From Macrostomum lignano (Eukaryota): DNA of 64,000 nucleotides. The notes beneath the pieces are model-generated. The model did no database searches. It saw only the letters and a program-made list of their open reading frames with translations, and was not told the DNA's origin. The number at the start of each line of letters is the position of its first letter. Positions within the stretch are counted from its first letter, which is position 1. The DNA lies in assembly GCA_002269645.1 (NCBI GenBank), contig NIVC01000250.1, positions 1 through 64,000 on the forward strand, read 5' to 3'. This document shows, one piece after another, positions 13,345 through 62,406 of the stretch. The position numbers and the translations under genes are program-made.

Positions 13345-14990
13345 AGCCTGAAGGTTGGAAGGCGGTTCACCTGAAGGTTCAGAGGTGGTTTACCTGAAGG
13401 TTGGTAGGCGGTTTACCTGAAGGTTGGGAGGCGGTTTACCTGAAGGTTGGTAGGCGGTTTACCTGAAGGTTGGGAGGCGGTTTACCTGAAGGTTGGTAGG
13501 CGGTTTACCTGAAGGTTGGGAGGCGGTTTACCTGAAGATTGGAAGGCGGTTTACCTGAAGATTGGAAGGCGGTTCACCTGAAGGTTCAGAGGCGGTTTAT
13601 CTGAAGATTGGGAGGCAGTTTACCGGAAGGTTGGGAGGCGGTTTGCCTGAAGATTGGGAGGCGGTTTACCTGAAGGTTGGGAGGCGGTTTACCTGAAGGT
13701 TGGGAGGCGGTTTACCTGAAGGTTGGTAGGCGGTTTACCTGAAGGTTGGGAGGCGGTTTACCTGAAGATTGGAAGGCGGTTTATCTGAAGATCGGAAGGC
13801 GGTTTACCTGAAGATTGGAAGGCGGTTTACCTGAAGATTGGAAGGCGGTTTACCTGAAGGTTGGGAGGCGGTTTACCTGAAGATTGGAAGGCGGTTTACC
13901 TGAAGATTGGAAGGCGGTTTACCTGAAGATTGGAAGGCGGTTTACCTGAAGATTGGAAGGCGGTTCACCTGAAGGTTCAGAGGCGGTTTACCTGAAGATT
14001 GGAAGGCGGTTTACCTGAATGTTGGGAGGCGGTTTGCCTGAAGGTTGGGAGGCGGTTTGCCTGAAGGTTGGGAGGCGGTTCACCTGAAGATTGGGAGGCG
14101 GTTTACCTGAAGATTGGAAGGCGGTTTACCTGAAGATTGGAAGGCGGTTTACCTGAAGATTGGAAGGCGGTTTACCTGAAGATTGGAAGGCGGTTTACCT
14201 GAAGATTGGAAGGCGGTTTACCTGAAGATTGGAAGGCGGTTCACCTGAAGGTTCAGAGGCGGTTTACCTGAAGATTGGAAGGCGGTTTACCTGAATGTTG
14301 GGAGGCGGTTTGCCTGAAGGTTGGGAGGCGGTTTGCCTGAAGGTTGGGAGGAGGTTCACCTGAAGGTTGGGAGGCGGTTCACCTGAAGGTTGGGAGGCGG
14401 TTTACCTGAAGGTTGGGAGGAGGTCCACCTGAAGGTTGGGAGGAGGTTCACCTGAAGGTTGGGAGGCGGTTCACCTGAAGGTTGGGAGGCGGTTCACCTG
14501 AAGGTTGGGAGGCGGTTCACCTGAAGGTTGGGAGGCGGTTTACCTGAAGGTTGGGAGGAGGTCCACCTGAAGGTTGGGAGGAGGTTCACCTGAAGGTTCA
14601 GAGGCAATTTACCTGAAGGTTGGGAGGCGGTTCACCTGAAGGTTCAGAGGCAATTTACCTGAAGGTTGGGTGGCGGTTCACCTGAAGGTTGGGAGGCGGT
14701 TCACCTGAAGGTTGGGAGGCGGTTCACCTGAAGGTTGGGAGGCGGTTTACCTGAAGGTTGGGAGGAGGTCCACCTGAAGGTTGGGAGGAGGTTCACCTGA
14801 AGGTTGGGAGGCGGTTCACCTGAAGGTTGGGAGGCGGTTTACCTGAAGGTTGGGAGGAGGTCCACCTGAAGGTTGGGAGGAGGTTCACCTGAAGGTTCAG
14901 AGGCAATTTACCTGAAGGTTGGGAGGCGGTTCACCTGAAGGTTGGGAGGCGGTTCACCTGAAGGTTGGGAGGCGGTTGACCTGAAGGCTG
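13345..14990. repeat. 23-bp minisatellite TGAAGGTTGGGAGGCGGTTTACC
   Basis: Direct reading. Confidence 0.96.
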
Positions 14991-15137
14991 GAGGGGGATT
15001 TAAAGCCTCACCTAAAGCCTTACAATGGAGGCAGAGCATATAAGCGTCGGGCTAAAGTCCTTAGTTCGATTCCAGGCCGCTGTACACCCCTAAGTAAGAG
15101 GAATGTGCACGGCCGCTTATCTCCTCTTACAACTCAC

Positions 15138-20015: not shown

Positions 20016-22200
20016 GTGAGTGGTGGCTGGCGGAGAGGCTCAAGAATCGGAGTGGGGTGGCTGGTGGAGAGGCTCAAGAATCGGAGTGGGGTGGCTGGCG
20101 GAGAGGCTCAAGAATCGGAGTGGGGTGGCTGGCGAAGAGGCTCAAGAATCGGAGTGGGGTGGCTGGCGGAGAGGCTCAAGAATCGGAGTGGGGTGGCTGG
20201 CGGAGAGGCTCAAGAATCGGAGTGGGGTGGCTGGCGAAGAGGCTCAAGAATCGGAGTGGGGTGGCTGGCGGAGAGGCTCAAGAATCGGAGTGGGGTGGCT
20301 GGCGGAGAGGCTCAAGAATCGGAGTGGGGTGGCTGGTGACTGGCGGAGAGGCTCAAGAATCGGAGTGGGGTGGCTGGCGGAGAGGCTCAAGAATCGGAGT
20401 GGGGTGGCTGGCGGAGAGGCTCAAGAATCGGAGTGGGGTGGCTGGTGGAGAGGATCAAGAATCGGAGTGGGTGGCTGGCGGAGAGGCTCAAGAATCGGAG
20501 TGGGGTGGCTGGCGGAGACGCTCAAGAATCGGAGTGGGGTGGCTGGCGGAGAGGCTCAAGAATCGGAGTGGGGTGGCTGGCGGAGAGGCTCAAGAATCGG
20601 AGTGGGGTGGCTGGCGGAGAGGCTCAAGAATCGGAGTGGGGTGGCTGGCGGAGAGGCTCAAGAATCGGAGTGGGGTGGCTGGCGGAGAGGCTCAAGAATC
20701 GGAGTGGGGTGGCTGGCGGAGAGGCTCAAGAATCGGAGTGGGGTGGCTGGCGGAGAGGCTCAAGAATCGGAGTGGGGTGGCTGGCGAAGAGGCTCAAGAA
20801 TCGGAGTGGGGTGGCTGGCGGAGAGGCTCAAGAATCGGAGTGGGGTGGCTGGCGGAGAGGCTCAAGAATCGGAGTGGGGTGGCTGGCGGAGAGGCTCAAG
20901 AATCGGAGTGGGGTGGCTGGTGGAGAGGCTCAAGAATCGGAGTGGGGTGGCTGGCGGAGAGGCTCAAGAATCGGAGTGGGGTGGCTGGCGGAGAGGCTCA
21001 AGAATCGGAGTGGGGTGGCTGGCGGAGAGGCTCAAGAATCGGAGTGGGGTGGCTGGTGGAGAGGCTCAAGAATCGGAGTGGGGTGGCTGGCGGAGAGGCT
21101 CAAGAATCGGAGTGGGGTGGCTGGCGGAGAGGCTCAAGAATCGGAGTGGGGTGGCTGGCGGAGAGGCTCAAGAATCGGAGTGGGGTGGCTGGCGAAGAGG
21201 CTCAAGAATCGGAGTGGGGTGGCTGGCGGAGAGGCTCAAGAATCGGAGTGGGGTGGCTGGCGGAGAGGCTCAAGAATCGGAGTGGGGTGGCTGGCGAAGA
21301 GGCTCAAGAATCGGAGTGGGGTGGCTGGTGGAGAGGATCAAGAATCGGAGTGGGGTGGCTGGCGGAGAGGCTCAAGAATCGGAGTGGGGTGGCTGGCGGA
21401 GACGCTCAAGAATCGGAGTGGGGTGGCTGGCGGAGAGGCTCAAGAATCGGAGTGGGGTGGCTGGCGGAGAGGCTCAAGAATCGGAGTGGGGTGGCTGGTG
21501 GAGAGGCTCAAGAATCGGAGTGGGGTGGCTGGCGGAGAGGCTCAAGAATCGGAGTGGGGTGGCTGGCGGAGAGGCTCAAGAATCGGAGTGGGGTGGCTGG
21601 CGGAGAGGCTCAAGAATCGGAGTGGGGTGGCTGGCGGAGAGGCTCAAGAATCGGAGTGGGGTGGCTGGCGGAGAGGCTCAAGAATCGGAGTGGGGTGGCT
21701 GGCGGAGAGGCTCAAGAATCGGAGTGGGGTGGCTGGCGGAGAGGCTCAAGAATCGGAGTGGGGTGGCTGGCGAAGAGGCTCAAGAATCGGAGTGGGGTGG
21801 CTGGCGGAGAGGCTCAAGAATCGGAGTGGGGTGGCTGGCGGAGAGGCTCAAGAATCGGAGTGGGGTGGCTGGCGGAGAGGCTCAAGAATCGGAGTGGGGT
21901 GGCTGGTGGAGAGGCTCAAGAATCGGAGTGGGGTGGCTGGCGGAGAGGCTCAAGAATCGGAGTGGGGTGGCTGGCGGAGAGGCTCAAGAATCGGAGTGGG
22001 GTGGCTGGCGGAGAGGCTCAAGAATCGGAGTGGGGTGGCTGGTGGAGAGGCTCAAGAATCGGAGTGGGGTGGCTGGCGGAGAGGCTCAAGAATCGGAGTG
22101 GGGTGGCTGGCGGAGAGGCTCAAGAATCGGAGTGGGGTGGCTGGCGGAGAGGCTCAAGAATCGGAGTGGGGTGGCTGGCGGAGAGGCTCAAGAATCGGAG
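20016..22200. repeat. 34-bp G-rich minisatellite GGCTGGCGGAGAGGCTCAAGAATCGGAGTGGGGT (about 2.2 kb)
   Basis: Direct reading; produces stop-free frames with 34-aa periodicity. Confidence 0.97.
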
Positions 22201-25490: not shown

Positions 25491-25597
25491 GATTCGTCAC
25501 ACTCTTGTCCTTTCATCAATCGCACCGCCTTTCCCAGCTTAAAAGCCATCAGCCACACAGCTCTAAAACACAGCGAGGTGAGCTATTATGGTCTCAC

Positions 25598-26149
25598 CTT
25601 GAACCCGGTGACAATAAAGCCGACTTTGTCCCTATGCGCGTACATCGCCCTCTGCAGCAGGTGCTTGGACACCGACGCCCCTGGCGGGGTGCTTCTGGCG
25701 CCCATTTTGCAGTCCATGACGCACGGCCGCTTCAATTCGTACAGCACGTCCTCCAAGCCGAGGTAGAACTGGCCAGTGTCGTCAGCTCTGAACAGGCCGT
25801 TGTAGGCGGGCAGGAACTCGCGCAGACTGACGGAATCCTCAGCTGATTTGCAGCCAGCCAGGTGCTTCTCGCTGTACACAGCGGAGTAAAACTGCGCCTC
25901 TTGCGGCCCTTTCGGCGGCTGCTGGACAGGCTTGAAGAGCACGCCGCCTGAGCACACGATGCCGTGGCCGGAGACACACAGCAGGCCGTGACCTCCAACC
26001 TGATGACCATACTCTTGCAGCCCGAGTGGCAGCACCTGCAGCTGGTGCCGCAGGTCTTTGTCCGCCACAACGCTGATCTCGCCATCATCTTCAACAGCAG
26101 CTGCTGGCCACTGACCTCGAAGACCGCGCGAACGGCAGAGGCACAGCAG
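25598..26149 (-). CDS. IPMK: Inositol polyphosphate multikinase, first visible coding exon (5' boundary uncertain; no in-frame ATG)
   Basis: HQVGGHG…KPVQQPPKGPQEAQFY…LEDVLYELKRPCVMDCKMG carries the IP-kinase PxxxDxKxG motif and the IPMK HQV.GH / P.G..E..FY motifs. Donor AAG|gtgaga. Confidence 0.85.
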
Positions 26150-29139: not shown

Positions 29140-29392
29140 GTCTATCCTTGTAGAGGGTAGCAGTCTATCCTTGTAGAGGGTAGCAGTCTATCTATGGAGT
29201 AGAAGTCTATCACTCTATGGGGAAGAAGTCTATCACTCTATGGGGCAGAAGTCTGTCACTCTATGGGGCAGAAGTCTGTCACTCTATGGGGCAGAAGTCT
29301 GTCACTCTATGGGGCAGAAGTCTGTCACTCTATGGAGTAGAAGTCTGTCACTCTATGGAGTAGAAGTCTGTCACTCTATGGGGCAGAAGTCT
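29140..29392. repeat. 23-bp repeat GGGCAGAAGTCTGTCACTCTATG
   Basis: Direct reading. Confidence 0.9.
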
Positions 29393-29433
29393 CAGGCAGA
29401 AATCAAAAAACATTTTCAACTTATAAGTCGCAC

Positions 29434-30015
29434 CTAAAGTCCGCAGAGCCACAAAAGCGGCCACAAAGGGCAGCAGAGACAGGGTCCAGGGCCTTGTCCA
29501 CGCGTACACCAGCGCGTGGCCCCACAGCAGCAGCACAAAGAAAGTCTTGCTGCTCCGCGACTGCTGCTGCTGGCGCCGCTGTTTCTGTCGAATCAGTCGG
29601 TCGGCATTGACGCCGCAGCTCATGGATCGGGAGACTCGGCGCCTCGCCTGCGGCAGCGGCGGCGGCGGCTGCTGCTGCTGGCGAACTGCAGGCGTCGAAG
29701 TGCCACCCGAAGGTGACGCCGCGTCCACATTGTCGTCGTTGCCGCTCGAAACAATCGGCTGAAGATTCTCGTCGGCTATTGCCGTCTCCTCGGTGGAAAG
29801 CTGCTGCTGCTGCTGTTCTTGAGGAGTTTCGTCCGGTAGGTCGACGGGGTCATCGTCGGACTCCGACTCGCCCGTTGCCGCCGATGCCGCCACTGCTGCA
29901 GCGGTTGACGGCGAGTTGTTCGACCCGACCAGGCTCAGCAGGGAGGCGAAATCGTCTGCAGAGTTGAAGGTCAAGTGACGTGCAGTTCTCAGCGATGGAG
30001 GCTGTGAGCTGACAC
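29434..30015 (-). CDS. TMEM245: TMEM245 exon 3 (low-complexity loop, then FFVLLLWGHALVYAWTRPW TM segment); 5' boundary uncertain (30015 or 30024)
   Basis: Open frame with phase-1 acceptor ctcag|GT and donor TTA G|gtgcg. Length 582 fits phase 1 to phase 1. Confidence 0.7.
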
Positions 30016-30129
30016 CTGAGCAAGCTGGCACACGCTCGCACAGAGTGTACAGCGGCGATGACTGTCTCATTTCTGGCCCTCGTAAGGCCGGAGCGGCACG
30101 ACATGTACCTCCTCTGAAACTGCCTCTGT

Positions 30130-31042
30130 AAATGGCGCCCCCCTCTGTAGTTGGCGCCCCCTCTGTAGCTGGCGCCCTCTGAATCCGGCGCCCCCCTCTG
30201 TAGCTGGCGCCCTCTCTGTAGTTGGCGCCCCCCTCTGTATTTGGCGCCCCCTCTGTAACTGGCGCCCCCTGTAGTGGGCACCCCCTTTGTAGTTGGCGCC
30301 TCCTCTGTATCCGGCGACCCCTCTGTAGTTGGCGCCTCCTCTGTAGCTGGCGCCCCCCTCTATAGTTGGCGCCCCCTCTGTAGTTGGCGCCCCCCCTGAA
30401 TCCGGCGCCCCCCTCTGTAGTTGGTGCCCCCTCTGTATTTGGCGCCCCCTCTGTAGTTGGCGCCCCCTCTGTAGTTGGCACCCCCTCTGTAGTTGGCGCC
30501 CCCTCTGTAGTTGGCGCCCCCTTCTGTAGCTGGCGCCCCCTCTGTAGTTGGCGCCCCCCCTCTGTAGCTGGCGCCCCCCTCTGTAGCTGACGCCCCTGAA
30601 TCCGGCGCTCCTCTCTGTAGCTGGCGCCCCCCCTCTGTATTTGGCGCCCCCTCTGTAGTTGGCGCCTCCTCTGTAGCTGGCGCCCCCCTCTGTAGCTGGC
30701 GCCCCCCCCCTCTGTATTTGGCGCCCCCTCTGTAGTTGGCGCCTCCTCTGTAGTTGGCGCCTCCTCTGTAGCTGGCGCCCCCTCTGTAGCTGGCGCCCCC
30801 CTCTGTATTTGGCGCCCCCTCTGTAGTTGGCGCCTCCTCTGTAGCTGGCGCCCCCTCTGTAGTTGGTGCCTCCTCTGTAGCTGGCGCCCCCTCTGTAGTT
30901 GGCGCCCCCCCTCTGTAGTTGGCGCCCCCTCTGTAGCTGGCGCCCCCCTCTGTAGCTGGCGCCCCTCTATAGCTGGCGCCCCCTCTGTAGTTGGCGCCCC
31001 CCTCTGTAGCTGGCGCCCACCTGTATCCGGCGCCCCCCTGTA
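30130..31042. repeat. 17-20-bp repeat GGCGCCCCCTCTGTAGTT
   Basis: Direct reading. Confidence 0.95.
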
Positions 31043-31126
31043 TTTAGGGCTCCATTCTGACAATTCAAATGCATAAGATAGATAAGAAAGGATGAAGGAT
31101 ATAATGAATTTATAAGCTAAGCTCAC

Positions 31127-31352: not shown

Positions 31353-32824
31353 CTAAAAAATATTTAGAGCATGATTTCCTTTTTATAGAATTAAGAACAA
31401 TACCATTTTATAGTCCTAATTAATATATTTGGTTAAAAATGCATATTTATAATGGTTTAAATTAGAATTTAAAAAGGTTACACTGCAAAAAAATATAAAA
31501 GTAACAATAATATAACCTTAATATCTAAATGATGGAACAAAAAAGTTTTTTAATGAATCTTTCTATGGTAAGAGATCAGGAATGACTATAGTGGTTTAGT
31601 GCAACACTCAATTGCATAAGTAGTCAAGGCTTAATTTAAAGGGGTCATGTTATTTTTTGGCTAAATTGGAATCATGGTTTAAGTCTACTAAAGGAAGTTT
31701 ATAGAATAGTTAGTAATGCCTCTTATTAGTCATGACTATATTTCAAATTAAAGTGCACCAATAATATAAGCATAGCTCTCCTTGTCTTAAACTAACTCAT
31801 GGTATCTAAAAAATCTAGATTGTTTTATATGCTTCAATTTCAAGATGCCTTAGGAATCTTTAGGAATAGGCCTATTCCTTTAAGAGCATAAAGCATATAG
31901 AAAATTTAGAAAATGGTTTTTTATTATTAAAACAATCAATATACTATGCTTAATAGTAAGACTATAACTATTAATTTTATTAGTCCTAATCCCTATTGGA
32001 ATAAATGTTGAAAACCCATGGACATGCACTTTAAAAAAAGAGTCAAACTATTTTACTGCACTTTAGGATTATTAGATTTTCCGTTTTGTCAAAACCAAAA
32101 TTCAGAAAAACAAAGTTTAGTATGACCAATAGTCACTTTTTTGCTTTCAATTTACTGCTTATGCAAAATGAAATACATGTATATGTAGCAGAAATTAGTC
32201 TATTTTTAGCAACTTTTTAGACACTTCCAAAATTTTGACTTCTAAATTTTTTTTGAAATTGAAATTTACTCTTTAATGTATAGGCCCCTTCTACAGAGGT
32301 ATTAGACCCCTTTCCATGTATATGTATTTGCTAGAGCAGCAGCCAGCAGGAAAGGGCAGCATGTGCGCAGGTGCTGCATGCCTGTGTATGCATTGCACTT
32401 TAGAAAAAATTCTAAAGTGCGCCAGATGCTATCTATGGTTTTACAACTTTTCCTATAAGGGTCCTAATACTATTTGATTAAAGTTTTAAAGAAAACAAAA
32501 TCTTCAAATTCAAATTTATTAAACTAAATGTCATCAATCTATTCTACAACTACTAATTAAAATATGCCATTTGTTATATAAAGTAGATAATTCATTGTTA
32601 TTAGGACTGTCTATATATTTAAATAACATAGGCCTAGTTGTATTTATTAAATAAAAAATCTATACTTGCATTAATAATAACATTATTTATTTTATTAGCA
32701 CAAAACACTTACTGATTGATCTAAATTTATGTGCATAAAAAGCTACATTTGACAACACTGAAAAAAACATTAAAAAGTCTTAAATATAGTATTAGTAGAT
32801 TCAAAATATTGCCAAATAACTTAC

Positions 32825-33334
32825 CCATGTAGTAGAGAAAATGCTTATGAATGCTGATAACTTAGTCCAAATTGTTATTAAAAGCTCTAAATGTGTTCGA
32901 ATGGGCACTAAACTAAGAAATAGATATACACATGGAACAACAATTATAGCAACTAGGATCTTTTTCCTGTATGCAAGAATCTTTGCATAAAAGAGGTCCA
33001 AAAGTGAATTAATAGCTGAGAATGGCAAGATAGCAGCTTCTACAAATAAAGGCCTGCTTGATTCTTGCGTCGTTTTTAACCAAATCTTTAGAAGCGATGT
33101 CAACTTTTGCTTTATTGGGTGCAGACATGATCCAACCAACAGTGCCCAAAGAAGAGGCTCAATAAAAGCTTCTAAAATGAAATATACTGCAATGCATGCA
33201 AGCAAAAATATGCCCACAAATGCTAAGGCTATAGTGTTGTAAAATGCCTGTTTAAGAGCTTTGTCATCGCTGGAAGGTAAAAACTTATAGAAGTAGTTCA
33301 ATGGTGAAAAGTCTTCACCAGGCTTGCTAGTCAT
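32825..33334 (-). CDS. TMEM245: TMEM245 exon 1 (ATG at 33334)
   Basis: Translation DKALKQAFYNTIALAFVGIFLLACIAVYFILEAFIEPLLWALLVGSCLHPIK matches the TMEM245 N-terminal motif (KQAFYNT...VYFILEAF..PLLWA....LHP.K). Ends at donor TGG|GTAAGT, phase 0. Confidence 0.92.
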
Positions 33335-46440: not shown

Positions 46441-49400
46441 TTCGATGGCTTGGGCCTGAGGTAGTCCAGTGTCCAGTCGCTCGCTCCACAGTCAGCTCAA
46501 GGACCACTAGGAACACTCGGGTCTAATTATAGTCCTTGGGTCAGCTCCGACCCCATTAGGTGTTGTTTGAGAAGGGTACGCAATAAAAATCTATCACACA
46601 GAACTTCATCATGTACGGCCTCCAAAATGCCGCTTGTTTTAACTTAAACATTAAAATTGCCATAGTGAATATTCATGTACACCCCTGGCCAGCATGAGCC
46701 ACCATGAGCGAGTGCAGGTTGTATTTAAGCTTGACAATGTCATCCTAACATGTACATGTACATAGCAAGAACATCTTGGTATATAGCAAGAAGTCTGGTA
46801 TATAGCCGTCTCTGATTAGATGTGTAGTTAAAATGTACAGGTTGCGACCAAATAGTGTAGTAGTCGACGCGAGGCCAGTAGAATTTAAGACGCGAGGCCA
46901 GTACATGTAACCTAGCTGCTAAAAGCTGTGCGCAGACCTCGAATACCGGTACACGCACTACACTACTGCACCCCGGAGGGTCAAACGCATTTTTTCTATT
47001 GTGTTTAATAATGATACGCTCGTAATTACCAGCTGTGACTTCAAGCCCCATCCGAGGTCATTCATGTGAGGCTGTACTGTAGTTTTGGAATTTGTTGGCA
47101 TTATATTGGTGCATTGCCGTTCAAAAAGCGACAGGGGCTCTTCATGGGATACATGCATGTAGTCCACTCATAATTTCTGTGTACAGCGTGTACGTACATG
47201 CGTGGATGCATTATATAACATGTACCCTTTTTTTAGCTTGAAGGCGATCTGCTGTTTCAGCAGTTGTCAAATTTGGGGCCACAGAGCTTTCGACCAATTT
47301 TCATCTTCCTGCAGTGGCTCCAGACCCCAACGAAATTTTTTTAAACAGTTCTAAAGCGGTTAGTTATCAAAGTTGAAGTACTGCTGCTGTGTAAGGCTTT
47401 TCAAAGTCCTTCCGGCGGATTCTGCGAATACATTAGACCATATTACAGACGTAGAAAACCATCGCATTACATTGGGTGCAGTGATGAGATGAATACTGGA
47501 GACCTGTGTTATATGTACATGAAGGCTCTGCGCAGGCATGTAGCTAAAAAGCAAAATGTCGAGGCAGGTTAATTGCGAAGCATGCAGCCATAATAATTTA
47601 TTCAGTGTTTAAGATAATAAATACATTTATATCTTTACATAAGTTTATATCTTGTGCAATCAGAAAGGCACGATTTTATTCATGAGCTTTTGATTTTGAT
47701 TTTGACGCGCTCAATGTCCCTCGTTTCTAATCATTTTAAAATATCTTCTTTTATATTTTCGCGCTGAACTTATGGGGGCTATATTTGTAGTTTTAACTTC
47801 TGAACTATTTGCATGCAGGAGGCCTATGCAGATGCATAAGAATTTACGCCTAGATATTAGTTTGTGAAAATTGCGACAAGAGGGGTATTAAAACTTAAAA
47901 TATTATTTTAATTTTTAAGCCAGTTCAAGGCACTAATTCAAAAAGGTAAAACTTGCTAGAGATCGAGCTAGAGATCGAAACTAAAATTTACTTGTTTCTG
48001 ACAGATTTTATAGTCATTGCTTTAATGTTATCTGCATTATATATAAAAAATAAGAAATAAATAGCGCCTGAATCTATCCTACTTCGTTTTTGCTAAGAGC
48101 TATTTGAATCATTTGACTAAAACCGCGCGTCAAAGTATTCTACGTTTGATCTAAAACGCAAATGGGAAGAAGCTACAGAGTAAGTAAAAAAAGATTAAAC
48201 ACATGCTACTTACGCAAAAACTATGTTTGCTTATCGTTTTTTAATTTTAATCTGTAAACTTTCCATCTTTGTAAACCAATATTTATGCAGAGTTTAGACT
48301 AGCTAGAGGGATTATTTATTTAGAAGACATAAGGCTAAGAGCCTAAGGCTGGGTAGGCTTAGCTCCTAGAGCTTGAACTTAAATCTCTCTATCTTAGATT
48401 TGTATTTGTAGTAGGAAGTTCTAAACTTTGAATTATTTAAATCATTTTTCCTACAAGTGCTAATTTGGCCATTCAATATGTTTAACTCAGCTATGTTGAG
48501 CTATTATTGATTTAGATTAAATAACTTTCTCTTTGCTTTCGCCTTACTATAGGATAGGCCCTAATTAGTATTACTTAGCATGCATATGAAATCAGCCTAT
48601 GTTTTAATTTATTTTAGATAATATTTAGTTGCTTTTTTAAATGAAAAAATGTCATCATATCTAACTTATTTTCACATTCTCAAATCTGTTAGGCTTATAT
48701 GGTACTGTACCTAGGAAACATAGACAGACTATACATAGGAAAAAGTGACCCCTTCATTATATTTTCAAGTTTATGCAAGCAAAACATATTTACTCATTAT
48801 TTATATGCCAGACATTATTGGAAGAGGTTGCAACAATAAAAGACCTTTTTTGCATTGCAACACAAGGAACCTTTCTTGCATTAGGCCCTATAGACATGCC
48901 CAATCTCAAAATTTCACCTATCTATTGCAACTTAGTTTTGTCCAGATTTGTGACTTAGTTCCCCCAATTGCAACTGAATTTTCACTTTATATGACTTTTC
49001 TTGCCTTTTTCTCTTTTTTCTCTTTCTCTTTTTCTCCTCTTTCCCCTCTCTCTTTTTTCTCTCTGTGACAGGCCTTTTGGCTCTGTCTTTCTAAACTTCT
49101 AACTATTAGTGTTTATTAAATATCCTACGAGCTGCCACCAAAGTTGTTACAGGCCTTTCACCTCTTACTTTATCAATTTTAATCCCACCGATTTGCCAAC
49201 TACAGTTATCCTGATTATACTTGCTTTTACTCCCTAACTATTTCTTAGAATTTCATTTAAATATTTCTGGGTAGCGTTCTTAGTAGCGTTTCTGGTAGCT
49301 TATGGCTTGCTTTCTGGTAGCGTTCTAGTAGCTTATGGCCTGAGCGGTCTAGTACTGGTATATGTATTAGTGTATAGTCCTAATCGGGCGTTCACCAAGA

Positions 49401-51207
49401 CTAGAGGGTCACGGCGCCTCTCTTAGTATATCTCCAGGAATTAGTCCCAATTCCCTTCTCTTAGCAAATTTCTTAGAATCGTTTCACAGGTTTTGCAAAT
49501 GAAGAAGTCGCTATTTAGCTCAAAGACTTTGAAATGGTTTAGATTGAACTGCTTATTCTGTTCGCAATTATTTGCTCACGGGTAAAAGACAGTTAGAGTA
49601 TATTTGTCGCGAAACCACTCCTATATATAGTGATTTTCCCCACATACGATTAAAACAAAAAATAATTCTCCAATTTATTTCGCGCATTAAAACAAACTAT
49701 TATTTGGCGTTCGCGTAGATTCAGTTTCTAAGAAAGATTCGAATATACAGTTATTACATTGAAAGAACATTCGAGTATACTATGATAAAGGCATAGCACT
49801 AGTACATCTCCTTTCTTTTCCTTTTCTCTTCCTCTCCTCTCTTTCCTCCCCAAATTTTTTGTTTTTTACATTTTCAATTTTGTGACCTTACCTTGGCCGG
49901 TGGCTATTTCACCCATCCAGTTTGGATGGGTTGGACAGGTGTTGGACATGTATGTTGCATTATAACATTTTGGTCTTTTGTATGCTAACAACTATACCAT
50001 ATACTAGCTCTATGGTGCAATTTTCTGGTGGATTGTTCTGTATACTGGATATTTTATTTTATGCCAACCCCTTTTTCATGTCTATTGTATACTAGAATTT
50101 TCTAGTATAGACCTATATGTAAGATTCAAGAGTAGGGCTTTATTTTTAATTAATTTTAAATTTTAAATTTAATTTTAATGGTATTTAAAAGCTTATGAAA
50201 GCTACTAAAGAAGTAGCATATGTATGTTGCTTTTTAACAATTATTTCTAGAGGTCTAAGAATAATAAAAAGGGGTAGGTGAGGGTATATTTTTTTATCTT
50301 AAGATAAAAAAGGCATTGTTTGCCTTTTAGCTTTAAATAAATAGTGCTTAATAACTAGTCTAAAATTTTAAGTATAATGTTAGAAGATTTTTTAAAGTAG
50401 TCAGTACTTTGTCTTAGATATTCAATAAAAAAATTTTTTTAAAATCCCTATTATATAGCCAAAGGTTTTAATGCAGATAGTTATTTACACCTATAAGAAT
50501 CAAAACTATACTTTAAATTAATATATAAATTAATAAATAATAGTGTACCAAAGCTTAGTTAATGTTTATAAGAAAGAAAGAAAACAGGCTTTAAAATACT
50601 TCTTTGTATTTTATATGTATATAATAAAAATATTTTAAGAATTATTTAGTATCATTTTCAATTTTGACCACAATTTGCTAAGCCTAAGAAAGAAAAAAAT
50701 GTTTTTTTGTTTAGAAATATATTGATATCTTGCTTATACCAATATATTGGCACTCATATCTTGGCAGTTTATAACTATAATAAATTTATTATCTTACTTA
50801 AATTTTTTTTATATTCCTAAGTTTTTTACTATTTGTTCTTATTGTATCAGTAGAAGTATATAGAAGAAATATAAGGACAACTGAATTCAACTTTTTACCT
50901 GTATTAGGAAAAGTAAAGATTAGAATTTCACCCAATTTTTCTTACACCTAATACAAAAGGCATAAAGATTGTGTACTATGCATTATATAACATTTATTTA
51001 AATGATTTTTTCGTTATATAGTTATTAGTTTATAGTTATAGTTATAAGAAATTTTCTTAGCATGCATAAAAATTTCAAAATAAAGCCTATTATCAGTTTG
51101 TTCATTAAGGAAATCTCAAATTCTATCTATTATAACAGTGCTTAACACCTTGGTCTCATTTAGCCAAATTGTGACTTGTGCAACTTTGACTCACTCCATT
51201 TGCACAG

Positions 51208-53355
51208 ATCTCCAAGATAATTGACAAGCGCAAGAAGCAAGGCCGAGTTGAATACAGGATCCGCTGGACTGGTTTCAAATCCAGTCAGGACACCTGGGAG
51301 CCGGCCACAGAGATCATGCCTGTTGCTTACCGATTGGTCAGAGATTTTCATAACCGATCAAAGAATTCAAATAATTCGGCTTCGAATGCCAGTTCACCGA
51401 GCTCTTCAAAGGAGCAGCAACCAATTGACCAGGGCTCTCCGAAAAAGCAGCAGACTCAGCCGAGGCTGCCGAAGCTCATGGCCCTGAAACAGCTGCAGCA
51501 GTCGCAGCCCGAACCGCCGCAGGCTCAGAAATTGCCGCAGAAGCAGCAGACAGCTGCTAAACTGATGCGAAAGAAAGGCGGCAAACAGCAACCGCAACGG
51601 GCTCGCGTGCTGGCTTTGCCAAAGAGAAAAGCCAAGAAAAGGCTGCAGAAATTGCAGCCAAAGCAGCAGAAGCAGCAAGCCAAGAAAAATAACCAGCAAA
51701 AATCTGCAGATGACGCTTCAACAGTTTCTGCTTCTAATCCGTCTTCAGCCGCGTCTGCATCCTCTTCTTCGTCGTCTGCTTCGTCCGCCGCATCGTCCGC
51801 TGCTTCTTCAACCGTATCGCCTAATTCGCAGCCTTCGCAGCCGCCTCAGCCGTTGCCACCGTCGCATCAGTCGCAGTCGCCGCCGCTGCCAATTCCGTCT
51901 CAGATGCAGCAGCAGCAGTCAGAGCTAGCGGCTCTGCCATCAGCATCTATTGATTGGAATTTGAAATACGGATTAGAAGGCGGCAGCGCTCCGGTCACGC
52001 CTCGACACTTGTCTCCTTCGTCTCCTTCGACAGCTCCTGTAGCTTTGATTGCATCCGCTGTCGATTCTCCTTCGGCTCTGCTAGCTCCGGCCTCGTCTCC
52101 GCCTCTGGCGCCTTCGCCGCGGCCTGAACAACAGCAGCAGCAGCAGCAACAGTCGCAGCCTTCGCTGCCGCAGACGCCGACATCGTCGTCTAGCGATCTT
52201 CGCCGCTACCACGCCGGAGTTATCGACGCTATTGATAGCATCCGTCGGTTGAAGCGCAAGGTACTACTAGATCGAGTAGTGCAAGCAGTGTGCAAGAAGC
52301 TCCGAGTCGGTGCTGGACTAGCGGAAGCGGTCATCGAGGATATGGTTAGAATTGGCCGCTTAAAAAAGGTCCGCTGTTCAACTGACAACTCGCTGACTCT
52401 GTACTTGCCTAATCAGAAGCCGCGCTCAGTTGCTGTGTCCACTGTGTCAGCCAAAGCTAAACCGAAGTCCCAGCAGCAGCAGCAGCTGCAAGCAAAGAAA
52501 ACAACTCATATTCGCAACAATTATCATGAGTTATTTGTTAAACAGCCGGCCCACAGTCCGGGTGTGTTTGAAATCTGGCTAGTTGGGCCCAGCAATGGCA
52601 CTGGACAGCCTGGCTGCTGCTTCACAGTCCGTCTGATGCAGGAGCTGTGCCGGGCGCTGCAGCAGGCGCTAAACAATCCAGCTTGCAGGCTGGTCCGTCT
52701 GGCTAACACAGATCCCCGCTGCTTTAGTAGGGGAGTCGATCTCAGCTCAATGCTAGCAGCCAAGCCCGGTCAGGAGGCTTCTCTAGCTGTCAATCAGCTC
52801 ACTGACGAATTGCAACGCTTAGTGTCGGCTATGGTTGAATTTCCCAAGTTATTGGTTGCCACGGTTACAGGAGCTTGCGTAGGCTTAGGCGCGGCCCTGC
52901 TGCCGCTGTGCGATTTTGTCTACGCTAGCGATAGCGCCTATTTTTATTTGCCCTACGCCAAGCTCAAGCAGCCGTGCGAGGCTGGCGTGTCCTACACTCT
53001 GCGACAGGCGTTGGGCAAGCCGACCGCCTCTGAGATGCTGCTTGCCGGACGGAAGCTCACAGCTAACGAGGCGTGCACTCGGGGCCTGGTGTCTAGCGTG
53101 ATCTTTGCTGACACATTTCAACAGGAAGCCGCCGTCCGTTGCGCCAGCATCGGCGCCAGCGTCGGTGCCGAGAATGTGCGCCAGACTAAAGCGCTGATGC
53201 ATTCGACTAGCAGGTCGTCTGTTATCCAGGCCTGCCAGGCCGAGTGCCTGGCCTTGCGCTCCTATTGGCTGAGAGATGACGCCAGGCAGCTGATGCGCGA
53301 ATTTCTTGGCGAAGATCGCGACTTGCTAGAGCGCGCGGAGGCGTCGGTCTTGTGA
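51208..53355 (+). CDS. CDYL: CDYL-like protein: chromodomain + winged-helix-like segment + crotonase/enoyl-CoA hydratase-like domain (large exon; upstream exon not identified)
   Basis: From acceptor cacag|ATC the frame reads ISKIIDKRKKQGRVEYRIRWTGFKSSQDTWEP (chromodomain) and runs into ORF 51316-53355. The C-terminus has FSRGVDL…FPKLLVATVTGACVGLGAALLPLCDFVYASDSAYF…ASEMLLAGRKLTANEA..GLV (crotonase fold). Chromo + crotonase is the CDY family architecture. Confidence 0.88.
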   Translation: MSKIIDKRKKQGRVEYRIRWTGFKSSQDTWEPATEIMPVAYRLVRDFHNRSKNSNNSASNASSPSSSKEQQPIDQGSPKKQQTQPRLPKLMALKQLQQSQPEPPQAQKLPQKQQTAAKLMRKKGGKQQPQRARVLALPKRKAKKRLQKLQPKQQKQQAKKNNQQKSADDASTVSASNPSSAASASSSSSSASSAASSAASSTVSPNSQPSQPPQPLPPSHQSQSPPLPIPSQMQQQQSELAALPSASIDWNLKYGLEGGSAPVTPRHLSPSSPSTAPVALIASAVDSPSALLAPASSPPLAPSPRPEQQQQQQQQSQPSLPQTPTSSSSDLRRYHAGVIDAIDSIRRLKRKVLLDRVVQAVCKKLRVGAGLAEAVIEDMVRIGRLKKVRCSTDNSLTLYLPNQKPRSVAVSTVSAKAKPKSQQQQQLQAKKTTHIRNNYHELFVKQPAHSPGVFEIWLVGPSNGTGQPGCCFTVRLMQELCRALQQALNNPACRLVRLANTDPRCFSRGVDLSSMLAAKPGQEASLAVNQLTDELQRLVSAMVEFPKLLVATVTGACVGLGAALLPLCDFVYASDSAYFYLPYAKLKQPCEAGVSYTLRQALGKPTASEMLLAGRKLTANEACTRGLVSSVIFADTFQQEAAVRCASIGASVGAENVRQTKALMHSTSRSSVIQACQAECLALRSYWLRDDARQLMREFLGEDRDLLERAEASVL

Positions 53356-54259
53356 CACGACCGGCTTGACCAGCTGACCAGATTGGCTATGCATTTTTTG
53401 AAGAGCAGAATTACAACAGCAGGGCTGCCATCTTGCCTTTCATCGCCAATTCTAATCTGTCGGCAAACACTAGGGCCAGAAGAAAGAACTAGAGGAGAAG
53501 AGAGATGAGATAGCAAAAGGAGAGAGAAGAAGAGAAGAAGGTGGTTGACTCTGCAGAGACATAAAATTGGATTAACTTTCAAAATAGTGCAATTTTTTTT
53601 TCAAAAGAAAGCAATTTTTATTGGAAAATAAGGATTATTATTATGTAATGCCATCAATGCCTATCAATAGCAACTCAAGACAGCTAAAATTAGTAATTTC
53701 AAATTTGTCTTTCCGTCTGTCTCCTTGCATGCGCTGGTATTGAAGTATTTAGTTTTTTGTGCTTGTACTTGTACTTGGTGAATATAGAGATTAATATTGG
53801 CTACTGACTACTGACAGCATCAGTAGGCATGCTTTTCCAAGGGTTATATTCTTTTAATCTTAAATTTCTGAATCGTTTTGTTCAAATCGCATTCCAATGC
53901 TTCGATTTGGGTAAAATTTCGATTACTAAATCGCGTAAAATCATATAACTGCCTGTTACTTTATGCGCTGGTTTCTTATCAGGGAATTATTATGTGCTTA
54001 TCCGATTAATTTTGTCGTTTGTGTAATAATTGTGTTGCAAGGCACTGCTTTGCCGTCGTGTGCGTTAGGTTTTTATTTTTGTCTGTTTTGCTATTTTTTG
54101 TGTTTTTGTCCGCTGTGAGTGTTGCAAGTGTGCTGTTAACACGATTTGCTTAAAACTTCCCCTGATATGTTAGCTATGGGATGTCATGTATAAAGCGCTT
54201 TAATTGCCCCCTTTATCCGGTCTTTGTTTGTGTCAGATTAAATTGACTCAGACTAAAAT

Positions 54260-55700
54260 TTCCCTGAGATTCTCCCTACAATCTCCCTGAGAATTGTCCT
54301 ACAGTCTACCTGAGAATCGCCCTACAGTCTACCTGAGAATTGCCCTACAATCTCCCTGAGAATTGCCCTACAATCTCCCTGAGAATTGCCCTACAGTCTT
54401 CCTGAGAATCGCCCTGCAATCTCCCTGAGAATCGCCCTACAATCTACCTGAGAATCGCCCTACAATCTCCCTGAGAATCACCCTACAGTCTCCCTGAGAA
54501 TCACCCTGCAATCTCCCTGAGAATCGCCCTACAGTCTCCCTGAGAATCGCCCTGCAATCTCCCTGAGAATCGCCCTACAGTCTCCCTGAGAATCGCCCTA
54601 CAGTCTCCTTGAGAATCGCCCTACAATCGCCCTGAGAATCGCCCTACAATCTACCTGAGAATCGCCCTAAAATCTCCCTGAGAATCGCCCTAAAATCTCC
54701 CTGAGAATCTCCCTACAATCTCCCTGATAATCGCCCTAAAATCTCCCTGAGAATCTCCCTACAATCTACCTGAGAATCGCCCTACAATCTCCCTGAGAAT
54801 CACCCTACAATCTACCTGAGAATCGCCCTACAATCTCCCTGAGAATCGCCCTGAAATCTACCTGAGAATCGACCTACAATCTCCATGAGAATCGCCCTAC
54901 AATCTCCCTGAGAATCGCCCTACAATCTCCCTGAGAATCGCCCTACAATCTCCCTGAGAATCGCCCTACAATCTCCCTGAGAATCGCCCTACAATCTACC
55001 TGAGAATCGCCCTACAATCTCCCTGAGAATCGCCCTACAATCTCCCTGAGAATCGCCCTAAAATCTCCCTGAGAATCTCCCTACAATCTACCGGAGAATC
55101 GCCCTACAATCTCCCTGAGAATCGCCCTACAATCTCCCTGAGAATCGCCCTACAATCTCCTTGAGAATCGCCCTACAATCTCCCTGAGAATCGCCCTACA
55201 ATCTACCTGAGAATCGCCCTACAATATCCCTGAGAATCGCCCTACAATCTCCCTGAGAATTGCACTACAATCTATCTGAGAATCGCCCTACAGTCTCCTT
55301 GAGAATCGCCCTACAATCTCCCTGAGAATCGCCCTGAAATCTACCTGAGAATCGACCTACAATCTCCATGAGAATCGCCCTACAATCTCCCTGAGAATCG
55401 CCCTAAAATCTCCCTGAGAATCGCCCTACAATCTCCCTGAGAATCGCCCTAAAATCTCCCTGAGAATCGCCCTACAATCTCCCTGAGAATCGCCCTACAA
55501 TCTCCCTGAGAATCGCCCTACAATCTACCTGAGAATCGCCCTACAATCTACCTGAGAATCGCCCTACAATCTACCTGAGAATCGCCCTACAATCTCCCTG
55601 AGAATCGCCCTACAATCTACCTGAGAATCGCCCTACAATCTCCCTGAGAATCGCCCTACAATCTACCTGAGAATCGCCCTACAATCTACCTGAGAATCGC
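54260..55700. repeat. 23-bp minisatellite CTGAGAATCGCCCTACAATCTCC
   Basis: Direct reading. Confidence 0.96.
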
Positions 55701-60332: not shown

Positions 60333-62406
60333 TTCTGCCTTTGACAATGTCCTTTTTCGCTCCTTCAGAAACTCTCTTTCCCGCAGGAATGTGAGACACA
60401 GCATTGTTCGCTGGATTTATTTTATGATCCGCAATAGGTTTGCGACATCTACGCTTATGGGCGTTACCTACACCCGAGCGGTGATGAAAGGCGGCCCGCA
60501 AGGTGGCGTGCTAACTCCACTTCTTTGGAATCTCGTCATGGACGAACTTCTAACCGCAGACATTCCCAGCAGTATCACCAGGGCGGGCTACGCTGATGAC
60601 GTTGCCGCGGTCGTCAGCGGACCTGACCCCGCCACTCTGCGCAACCTGATGCAACAATTCGCCGACAAGGCGGCTGACTGGGCCACGCAACATGGCCTAA
60701 AAATCAGCGTCACGAAGACTGTCGCTGTCGTTTTCACCAAGCGCCGTGCGTGGGAGATGAAAAACCTCACTGTCTATGGCAGAAACATCCCCTTCAAGAA
60801 GGAGGTCAAATACCTCGGTGTGACGCTAACGCATGACCTGCGCTGGACGAAGCACCTTGATAACGTCATCGGTCGGGCAAAACGCTGCTTTGCCCAGCTG
60901 CGCAGAGCCATCGGGCCGACTTGGGGCCTCTCGCCTAGAACGGTCCGTTGGATTTATACCGGCATCATCCGGCCCAGTATCACATACGCGAGTCTCATCT
61001 GGACTAGCGTGCTGGAGCAGAAGACCGCCCGTCAGCGCCTACACCAGCTGCAGGGCAGCATTTGTCGTGCCATCACAGGTGCGTACCCGTCTACCCCTTA
61101 CGAGGGGCTGAACACTATCCTTAATCTCCCTCCGCTTCACCTATTTATTAGGGCGGAGGCTATGAAGTCCGCCTCCCGACTTATCAGAGATAAAACGTTA
61201 AATAACGTACCCTCTGGCTTTATGCCTATGAAAACCTTAATCCCGCATATGGACTTTGTCCGCCGCGACCTCAACAACATCCACATGGACCTGGGCAATG
61301 TGGACAGTCGACTCCCCGCCCTCAACATCAGGAGGGGCTTCCAGACCGCCATCCCTGGCCGAGACAGCATTCCGCTGGATGTCGGCGTGAACCGGCGCAG
61401 CCAGGGCATTCACTGCTTCACCGACGGCTCGCTGTTCAACGGCCGCGCTGGAGCGGGTATTGCCATTTTCCACGAGGGTAAGATGCTTCTCCAGGAAGGT
61501 CTGCACCTCGGTGAGAACACCTCAGTTTTCCAAGCTGAAATTTGCGCCATTGAGCAGTGTGCCCAGAAACTGCTTCAGGCGAACATTAATAACTCTAATA
61601 TTAATTTCTACACTGATAGCCAAGCTGCTATTAAGGCCTTAACCACTGAGAATATCTCCGCTGCTACAGTATCTCAATGCCACCGCAGTGTGCAATCTCT
61701 CTCAGTCCTTAACAGGATTAGAATTATCTGGACACCCGGTCACAGCAACATCCTGGGCAACGAGCTCGCGGACTCTCTCGCCAAGGAGGGCAGCAACCCA
61801 GACGGCAAGCACCGTCTGATGAGGCTACCCACTCCAAGGTCGCAAGTCACCCGCCATATCCACAGGTGGCTCCATCAGCAGCACCAGCTCCACTGGAACA
61901 GCTGCACCGAGTACAGGCAGAGCCGCTCTGCCATGCCTAACCTGAACAGGAAAGTCTCTGATTACCTGATTTCGCTTAACAGAACCGACCTCAGGGAGAT
62001 GTGCATGGTCCTAACCGGCCATGGTTTCTTCCAGAGACATATCTCGTTGCAAACCGGTTGCCCTCCCACCTGTCCCTTCTGTGGCATAGGAGAGGAGACC
62101 GCGGAGCATCACGTCACCTTCTGCCCTTACTTCAACAAGGCGCGGCACAAATACATCGGCCACCCCCAGCGGATGGACGAGCTGACCACCCCGGACAATA
62201 TCCGTGACCTTCGCGCCTTCGTCCGTGACTCCGGCCGGATGAGGGTCGCTGATGTCTCCACTGTGAACCTGCCGACTACTGGCGGGGACCGGGTGCACCC
62301 CCAAGGTTAATCCTTGTGCTCTTTTACGTTGGGGTTGCGATAGGGGCCTCGCGGCCTATTCGCGGCGCCTGCGCCCCCCGTCAGTAGTAAGTAAGTAAGT
62401 AAGTAA
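60333..62406 (+). mobile_element. 5'-truncated non-LTR retrotransposon with RT, RNase H and CCHC motif (LOA/R1/I-like group), antisense in a CENPJ intron
   Basis: Uninterrupted frame SAFDNV…[14 protein letters not shown]…GYADD…KYLGV…CFTDGS…SVFQAEI…FYTDSQAA…WTPGHS.I.GNE.AD…CPFCG…ETAEH…CP. (TAAG)n tail at about 62385-62406. Candidate TSD AACCCCA. Confidence 0.95.

Follow-up and report, generated by a model that had tools for sequence, protein, structure and literature searches.

The stretch of DNA analysed here, called the window below, comprises positions 1 to 64,000 of contig NIVC01000250.1 in assembly GCA_002269645.1. The exact match of its protein product to PAA87064.1 / PAA90280.1 and 100% identity at the locus identify its source as Macrostomum lignano, a free-living flatworm. 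We concentrate on a plus-strand gene for a protein of 721 amino acids resembling CDYL, the chromodomain Y-like co-repressor / crotonyl-CoA hydratase family, and on a basic segment of this protein that lies between its chromodomain and its crotonase domain and shows remote similarity to the winged-helix (WH) domain of SAMD1. In NCBI, the gene product is named only "hypothetical protein" or "Chromo domain-containing protein".

The coding part of exon 1 (48162-48179, ATG GGA AGA AGC TAC AGA) was read from the sequence and specifies MGRSYR, which provides the first aromatic-cage Tyr of the chromodomain. A donor GTAAGT follows at 48180 and opens an intron of 3,028 nt (48180-51207) that ends in CACAG and carries an in-frame stop at 51187, upstream of the acceptor. 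Exon 2 (51208-53355), recognised by the list of open reading frames (ORFs), its translation and Pfam, is a single ORF of 2,148 nt, i.e. 715 residues and a stop codon. It contains the remainder of the chromodomain, a low-complexity linker, the WH-like domain and the crotonase domain, and its translation preceded by MGRSYR equals the NCBI product PAA87064.1. Since chromodomain, WH-like segment and crotonase domain share one exon and one ORF, they belong to one polypeptide under any gene model.

The locus on NIVC01000250.1 is 100% identical across exon 2. An exhaustive search of representative proteins returned one protein, whose cluster consists of two M. lignano entries, PAA90280.1 and PAA87064.1. 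A second copy of the gene, located on NIVC01000118.1, differs by 2 nt within the 2,148 nt of exon 2, with a single amino acid change, Asn/Asp, falling in the crotonase domain. As called, the gene is 5,194 nt long on NIVC01000250.1 versus 4,439 nt on NIVC01000118.1, the introns differing by about 755 nt; the two copies may represent alleles or a duplication of very recent date. Precomputed public annotation gives Chromo, ECH_1 and ECH_2 for both copies and nothing else. The ratio of observed to expected CpG is 0.68 in the window and 0.95 in exon 2, from which we draw no conclusion.

Both ends of the protein connect it with the CDYL family. The chromodomain, joined with exon 1, occupies 51208-51357 (+) in exon 2; it was located by alignment with CDYL chromodomains and passes the Pfam Chromo cut-off of 25.1 bits with 42.7 bits (E 5e-11). 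Its cage positions Y5, W26 and F29 (numbering of the 721-residue protein) align with the CDYL/CDYL2 cage in hemichordate and vertebrate chromodomains. The crotonase, or enoyl-CoA hydratase-isomerase, fold of the CDY/CDYL type is encoded at 52621-53307 (+; Pfam ECH_1 109.9 bits, exon residues 472-700). Compared with its best database relatives, hemichordate and vertebrate CDYL and CDYL2, this domain shows 36-46% identity. Its best relatives in the PDB are CDY2 (2FW2, 124.5 bits), CDY1 (2FBM, 120.7 bits), ECI2 (2F6Q, 113.7 bits) and CDYL (2GTR, 112.9 bits), the peroxisomal isomerase ECI2 thus scoring about as high as the CDY and CDYL structures. In common with CDYL, CDYL2 and CDY, the protein has an N-terminal chromodomain with the DKRK..G..EY..RW..(Y/F)....DTWEP signature and the aromatic cage, and a long hinge between this chromodomain and the C-terminal crotonase fold. 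Judged by these sequence features, the label CDYL-like is justified. The crotonase loop at 52960-52980 (+) reads 'QPCEAG' and keeps a Glu that is also present in the corresponding 'TPEGG' of hemichordate CDYL2 and 'SPEGC' of an ACBP-ECI2-like protein; aligned vertebrate CDYL and CDYL2 have Asp or Ala at the position of the Glu in 'PCEAG'.

It is the hinge in which the protein departs from its relatives. Compared with CDYL, it is much longer and rich in Q, S and P, and whereas a hinge free of further globular domains is expected of the CDYL family, that of M. lignano holds an ordered WH-like island at residues ~331-410. Linker 1 (51358-52197, +), defined by translation and hydrophobicity profile, is of low complexity and rich in S, P, Q, A and K; its basic run KRKAKKRLQK is likely a nuclear localisation signal (NLS). 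Linker 2, which is basic and Q-rich, and the N-terminal stretch that leads from it into the crotonase domain span 52417-52620 (+), according to translation, hydrophobicity and alignment. A second, weaker island, upstream of the WH-like domain, occurs in the linker at residues ~231-300 (window ~51880-52110, +), with hydrophobicity of 0.24-0.29 and raised complexity (SASIDWNLKYGLEGGSAPVTPRHL...APVALIASAVDSPSALLAP); it is covered by no Pfam match.

The WH-like domain proper comprises 73 amino acids (LRRYHAG...LYLPNQ) encoded at 52198-52416 (+); the evidence for it comes from Pfam SAMD1_WH, hhalign, shuffles, AlphaFold and isoelectric point (pI). The 55-residue peptide YHAGVIDAIDSIRRLKRKVLLDRVVQAVCKKLRVGAGLAEAVIEDMVRIGRLKKV is encoded exactly at 52207-52371 on the plus strand, and the beta-hairpin predicted after it ends at 52407, the range 52207-52410 thus spanning the whole unit. 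Over residues ~331-410 (~80 residues) hydrophobic content amounts to 0.33-0.48, as high as in the crotonase domain, versus 0.00-0.29 in the surrounding S/P/Q/A/K-rich linker. The domain is strongly basic, with a pI of 10.4 and 16 Lys and Arg versus 7 Asp and Glu; the pI of the SAMD1 WH is 10.8. A TTG-initiated ORF of 60 amino acids on the minus strand (52206-52388), antisense to the WH-coding segment, was rejected as a shadow of the long plus-strand ORF.

An earlier reading of the same DNA by eye, the original prediction, had placed an ordered segment in a low-complexity linker at 52207-52410, assigned the whole to a CDYL-like protein and held that vertebrate CDYL consists of chromo and crotonase-like domains only. 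All of this is borne out: peptide and hairpin form the hydrophobic island described above, the Chromo score and the nearest crotonase structures (CDY2, CDY1, CDYL) agree with the family label, and Pfam finds only Chromo and ECH in vertebrate CDYL, likewise in hemichordates.

SAMD1-like WHs are recently recognised readers of unmethylated CpG. Their family, Pfam PF21524 (SAMD1_WH; InterPro IPR048589; gathering threshold 24.5 bits), served as a yardstick, and the reference sequences of SAMD1 (6LUI), KAT6A (7Y43) and ZMYND11 (9LOA) were checked against the PDB. Among 24,736 Pfam families, SAMD1_WH is the top match of the isolated segment, scoring 18.0, 19.0 and 19.2 bits with three choices of boundaries (E 0.0033-0.0014). 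It is the only family below E 0.01, the sole other match being Ribosomal_S25 (E 0.15-0.16). The E-values of the segment are significant, though only borderline. Of the 63 positions of the model, the match takes in 3-54, nearly equal to the 3-52 covered by ZMYND11, which with 37.3 bits is the most distant of the accepted members (SAMD1 101 bits, KAT6A 98.6 bits).

Direct comparisons point in the same direction. Aligned with the SAMD1 WH without gaps, as had been proposed by eye, the segment keeps its similarity to the PDB-verified 6LUI sequence: 13 of 55 residues are identical, 28 are positives and the BLOSUM62 sum is 50, compared with -45 +/- 16 for shuffles (z = 6). With KAT6A, again without gaps, the segment shares 12 of 55 residues and reaches a sum of 42. 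The accepted pair SAMD1-ZMYND11 is comparable to the pair of segment and SAMD1, having 11 identities in 54 positions and a sum of 55. In an independent approach, hhalign of the segment against the SAMD1/KAT6A/ZMYND11 profile found the very same register (57-60 gapless columns), with a probability of 80.5% and P 1.3e-5 over 60 gapless columns. The hhalign score of 30.7 far exceeds those of 300 shuffles (9.9 +/- 2.0, maximum 16.3) and of the reversed sequence (8.1), but the resulting z of ~10 overstates significance, as the shuffles preserve composition only and lose helical periodicity. A hidden Markov model built from the three solved WHs ranked the M. lignano protein first of 629 natural sequences, weakly, with 9.2 bits vs 3.0 for the next one. 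In general, SAMD1-like WHs are similar in length to the segment, and their three helices align with it without gaps.

The same register brings the basic patch RRLKRK (52243-52260, +) to positions of DNA contact. Known contacts are R43, R45 and K46 in SAMD1 and K21, Q23, K24 and Q25 in KAT6A, and the K24A substitution in KAT6A causes a 32-fold loss of affinity (PMC8115922, PMC9881136). RRLKRK stands opposite RSRKAR in SAMD1 and KKQKQR in KAT6A. The first Arg of the patch corresponds to SAMD1 R43 / KAT6A K21 and the first Lys to SAMD1 K46 / KAT6A K24, the key CpG-contact lysine, while the Leu occupies the position of SAMD1 R45 / KAT6A Q23. Basic residues are kept at SAMD1 R43 and R48, a Gln is found at KAT6A N34, and the C-terminus of helix 1 is basic, as in SAMD1-like WHs.

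Single-sequence AlphaFold, run twice (84 and 73 amino acids), predicted in both cases the order helix-helix-helix-strand-strand (H-H-H-E-E), one of the models adding a short third strand past the hairpin. The predicted elements, all on the plus strand, are helix 1 (to ~52251), helix 2 (52258-52299), helix 3 (52312-52356), strand 1 (52366-52377) and strand 2 (52393-52404), and their boundaries agree with the sequence alignment. The topology of the SAMD1 WH is atypical in that helices 1 and 2 follow each other with no intervening strand (PMC8115922); the order predicted here is the same, in models of low confidence.

These results suggest that the segment probably belongs, as a very diverged member, to the SAMD1-like WH class (SAMD1, KAT6A/B WH1, ZMYND11). 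In terms of sequence comparison, it is SAMD1-like by remote similarity and not an established member of PF21524. A broader statement, namely that the protein is a lineage-specific CDYL variant whose basic insert of ~70 residues, built of three helices plus a hairpin, is a diverged SAMD1-like WH contacting DNA, is one towards which we lean only slightly.

A number of observations weigh against this reading and have to be set beside the similarities. Even the best score of the segment, 19.2 bits, lies under the PF21524 gathering threshold of 24.5 bits, in the full-length protein the SAMD1_WH score falls to 8.5 bits (E 3.1), and a phmmer query of the PDB sequences with the segment found no match at E <= 10. 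Three residues common to all three solved members, H32, G33 and G59, are replaced in the segment; the 'RP' after helix 1, kept only in SAMD1 and KAT6A, and the 'HG' after helix 2 are missing. Nor does the segment keep SAMD1 R45 or Y87 and K88 of the wing, which seems ~2 residues longer. Confidence of the AlphaFold models is low (pLDDT 62 and 61, pTM 0.42 and 0.35 for 84 and 73 amino acids, respectively). Foldseek against the PDB returned nothing at E < 1 for both models, and SAMD1, KAT6A and ZMYND11 are absent among the best 50 matches listed for either of them. The second list is loosely enriched in WH folds (Fur/DtxR, histone H5, LOTUS, Cdt1), without significance, and the first is noise; because the models are too poor, this result is uninformative rather than negative.

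Homologues of the segment were not found, either. When its 84 amino acids were compared exhaustively by phmmer with 1.84 billion representatives, the M. lignano protein itself was the sole match, and a word-indexed search with the segment found nothing. The two gene copies, only 2 nt apart in exon 2, render a selection comparison powerless. Evidence for the gene is genomic, the exact protein occurring in the NCBI genome assembly only and not in read-assembly collections. Finally, membership in the family does not guarantee strong DNA binding: the WH of full-length ZMYND11 binds DNA poorly. What holds its affinity back is Q28, found where the M. lignano segment has Leu; replacing it by Arg (Q28R) strengthens binding more than five-fold. 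DNA binding by the M. lignano segment is not to be assumed.

So far, then, the evidence for a WH domain is sub-threshold and comes from one species. The SAMD1/KAT6-type WH of the original prediction keeps its place as top Pfam family and by hhalign, while falling short of the Pfam cut-off and of any significant Foldseek match; its suggested check by AlphaFold and Foldseek yielded the H-H-H-E-E order, at low confidence and with no significant WH match.

Several of these points would also fit a folded module of helix-turn-helix/WH-like or three-helix type that has no descent from SAMD1-like WHs, comes from another WH family or from a lineage-specific invention, and serves protein-protein docking (partner recruitment, self-association) instead of DNA reading. 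The match to SAMD1_WH under the Pfam threshold, accompanied by a second weak match to Ribosomal_S25, the weak Foldseek neighbours scattered across many WH families and not concentrated on SAMD1/KAT6A, and the want of an orthologue that would anchor the family assignment are all compatible with such a module. Docking, moreover, is within reach of this class of domains, since the SAMD1 WH itself also contributes to association with KDM1A (PMC8115922). We nevertheless regard an unrelated module as unlikely, the most serious competitor though it is. SAMD1_WH stands alone in Pfam at E < 0.01, the hhalign score lies far over the shuffles with one gapless register running through all three helices, the DNA-contact lysine and the basic cluster fall exactly at the family positions, and the strong net positive charge suits nucleic-acid binding.

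A more radical view denies the segment the status of an independent domain. Amphipathic helices plus an NLS (RRLKRK) in a fast-evolving linker could produce likeness to SAMD1 by chance, owing to a helical composition rich in Arg, Lys and Leu. The AlphaFold values (pLDDT ~61, pTM 0.35-0.42), the zero homologues detected in 1.84 billion representatives, the E of 3.1 for SAMD1_WH in the full-length context and the shuffle nulls devoid of helical periodicity would all accord with it. On the other hand, the hydrophobic content over ~80 residues is typical of a folded core, both models agree on five elements including the hairpin, the profile E of 0.0014-0.0033 and the hhalign z of ~10 stand against it, and a stronger NLS-like run, KRKAKKRLQK, is already present upstream. 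Chance likeness in a fast-evolving linker is thus distinctly improbable. That the locus is non-functional, a decaying duplicate or mis-modelled gene from which the three-domain protein is never made, is hardly credible, for although the exact protein is confined to the NCBI genome assembly and the genome is highly duplicated and repeat-rich, an intact ORF of 2,148 nt exists in two copies 2 nt apart, splice sites are canonical (GTAAGT ... CAG), the three domains lie in one exon in an architecture independent of splicing, and chromodomain cage and crotonase core residues are kept.

Returning to a diverged SAMD1-like WH as the favoured identity of the segment, we examined how far the combination with chromodomain and crotonase domain extends. 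PF21524 is found in 0 of ~190 retrieved CDYL-family and ECI2-like proteins according to precomputed Pfam. When two hemichordate and two vertebrate CDYLs were scanned with Pfam at E <= 10, only Chromo and ECH appeared, with no trace of SAMD1_WH. When all retrieved proteins were searched with the segment by phmmer, only those of M. lignano matched. The word-indexed homologue searches behind this set (WH plus crotonase domain; crotonase domain alone) gave almost only vertebrate CDYL/CDYL2 and ECI2-like proteins and retrieved no spiralian or flatworm CDYL, and the first query, WH plus crotonase domain, probably lost candidate places to Q-rich proteins. The survey of invertebrate CDYL that had been recommended therefore amounts to two hemichordates, both without the WH domain; other flatworms and lophotrochozoans lie outside it.

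In the literature (searched for SAMD1 WH with CDYL, 'SAMD1-like', both locus tags and flatworm CDYL), the architecture is undescribed, which agrees with the earlier impression that it is unfamiliar among described proteins. The term 'SAMD1-like' turned up in just two papers, where it stands for SAMD1, KAT6A/B and ZMYND11. As no description was found, the chromo-WH-crotonase combination appears new. It differs from the proteins of that class in two respects. SAMD1-like WHs are N-terminal, whereas the WH-like segment lies in mid-protein, and the partner modules are a chromodomain and a crotonase domain here versus SAM, PHD/MYST or PHD-Bromo-PWWP-MYND there.

A possible course of events can be outlined for a diverged SAMD1-like WH in this position. 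The disordered hinge of CDYL would have acquired a basic ordered domain in the M. lignano lineage. The chromodomain would dock on methylated histone tails, the crotonase domain would oligomerise and bind CoA esters, as in CDYL, and the outcome would be multivalent binding of nucleosome and DNA through one co-repressor polypeptide. The segment might favour CpG, or specifically its unmethylated form. That the insert works as a methylation-sensitive, CpG-reading WH is speculative, and we consider it rather improbable. Such a reader would have a substrate in this animal, since PMC11292947, citing Wasik et al. 2015, reports M. lignano to have retained DNMT1 and DNMT3 and to have low 5-methylcytosine.

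The joining of a histone-methyl reader and a WH in one polypeptide has a parallel in the Polycomb-like proteins PHF1, MTF2 and PHF19, which carry a Tudor methyl reader and an extended-homology WH reading unmethylated CpG (PMC8115922). The likeness is one of concept only, with a chromodomain here in place of Tudor there. The Polycomb-like WH belongs to another WH subclass with another DNA-binding mode (W1 loop in the major groove), and no sequence relation to it was detected: no Pfam WH family except SAMD1_WH reached even E 0.1 with the segment.

SAMD1-like WHs are so far known from only three protein contexts, SAMD1, KAT6A/B-Enok and ZMYND11. If the assignment is true, the flatworm protein would add a fourth, independent one, and the class would be seen to move by domain shuffling. 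It would also represent a natural experiment in which reading of histone marks and reading of DNA sequence were merged in one co-repressor, and would offer a handle on chromatin targeting in M. lignano, a model of regeneration and of the germline. Were the WH in addition to read CpG, one polypeptide would integrate histone lysine methylation, CpG methylation state and acyl-CoA / histone crotonylation. If the segment is no DNA reader, it would be a lineage-specific insert in a fast-evolving linker and of local interest only.

The window is also rich in repeats. Minisatellites are packed through 440-63499, where Tandem Repeats Finder gave 41 rows with a score of at least 300, corresponding to ~30 distinct arrays (for example 13347-14991, 20022-22200 and 54253-55700). 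Their periods are mostly 10-50 bp, with up to 64-72 copies, and several arrays yield long spurious ORFs. The array at 54253-55700, with a period of 23, lies ~900 bp downstream of the CDYL-like gene.

Besides the repeats, fragments of other coding sequences were detected. An ORF fragment at 25586-26068 (-) matches Pfam IPK with 41.4 bits over model positions 1-59, where the inositol polyphosphate kinase domain begins, and probably represents a single exon of a gene of the IPK/IP6K type. Near the end of the window, an ORF of 639 amino acids (60391-62310, +) shows, in this order, the C-terminal portion of a reverse transcriptase (positions 108-205 of the RVT_1 model) and RNase H. It resembles a fragment of a retrotransposon pol gene, apparently 5'-truncated or frame-shifted upstream. 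On the minus strand, an ORF of 177 amino acids (32801-33334) is hydrophobic and membrane-protein-like and has no Pfam match. Another one, of 592 amino acids (29348-31126), consists of a translated 18-bp minisatellite in its N-terminal part and of unique sequence with a hydrophobic stretch in its C-terminal part. These two ORFs may be exons of one minus-strand gene.

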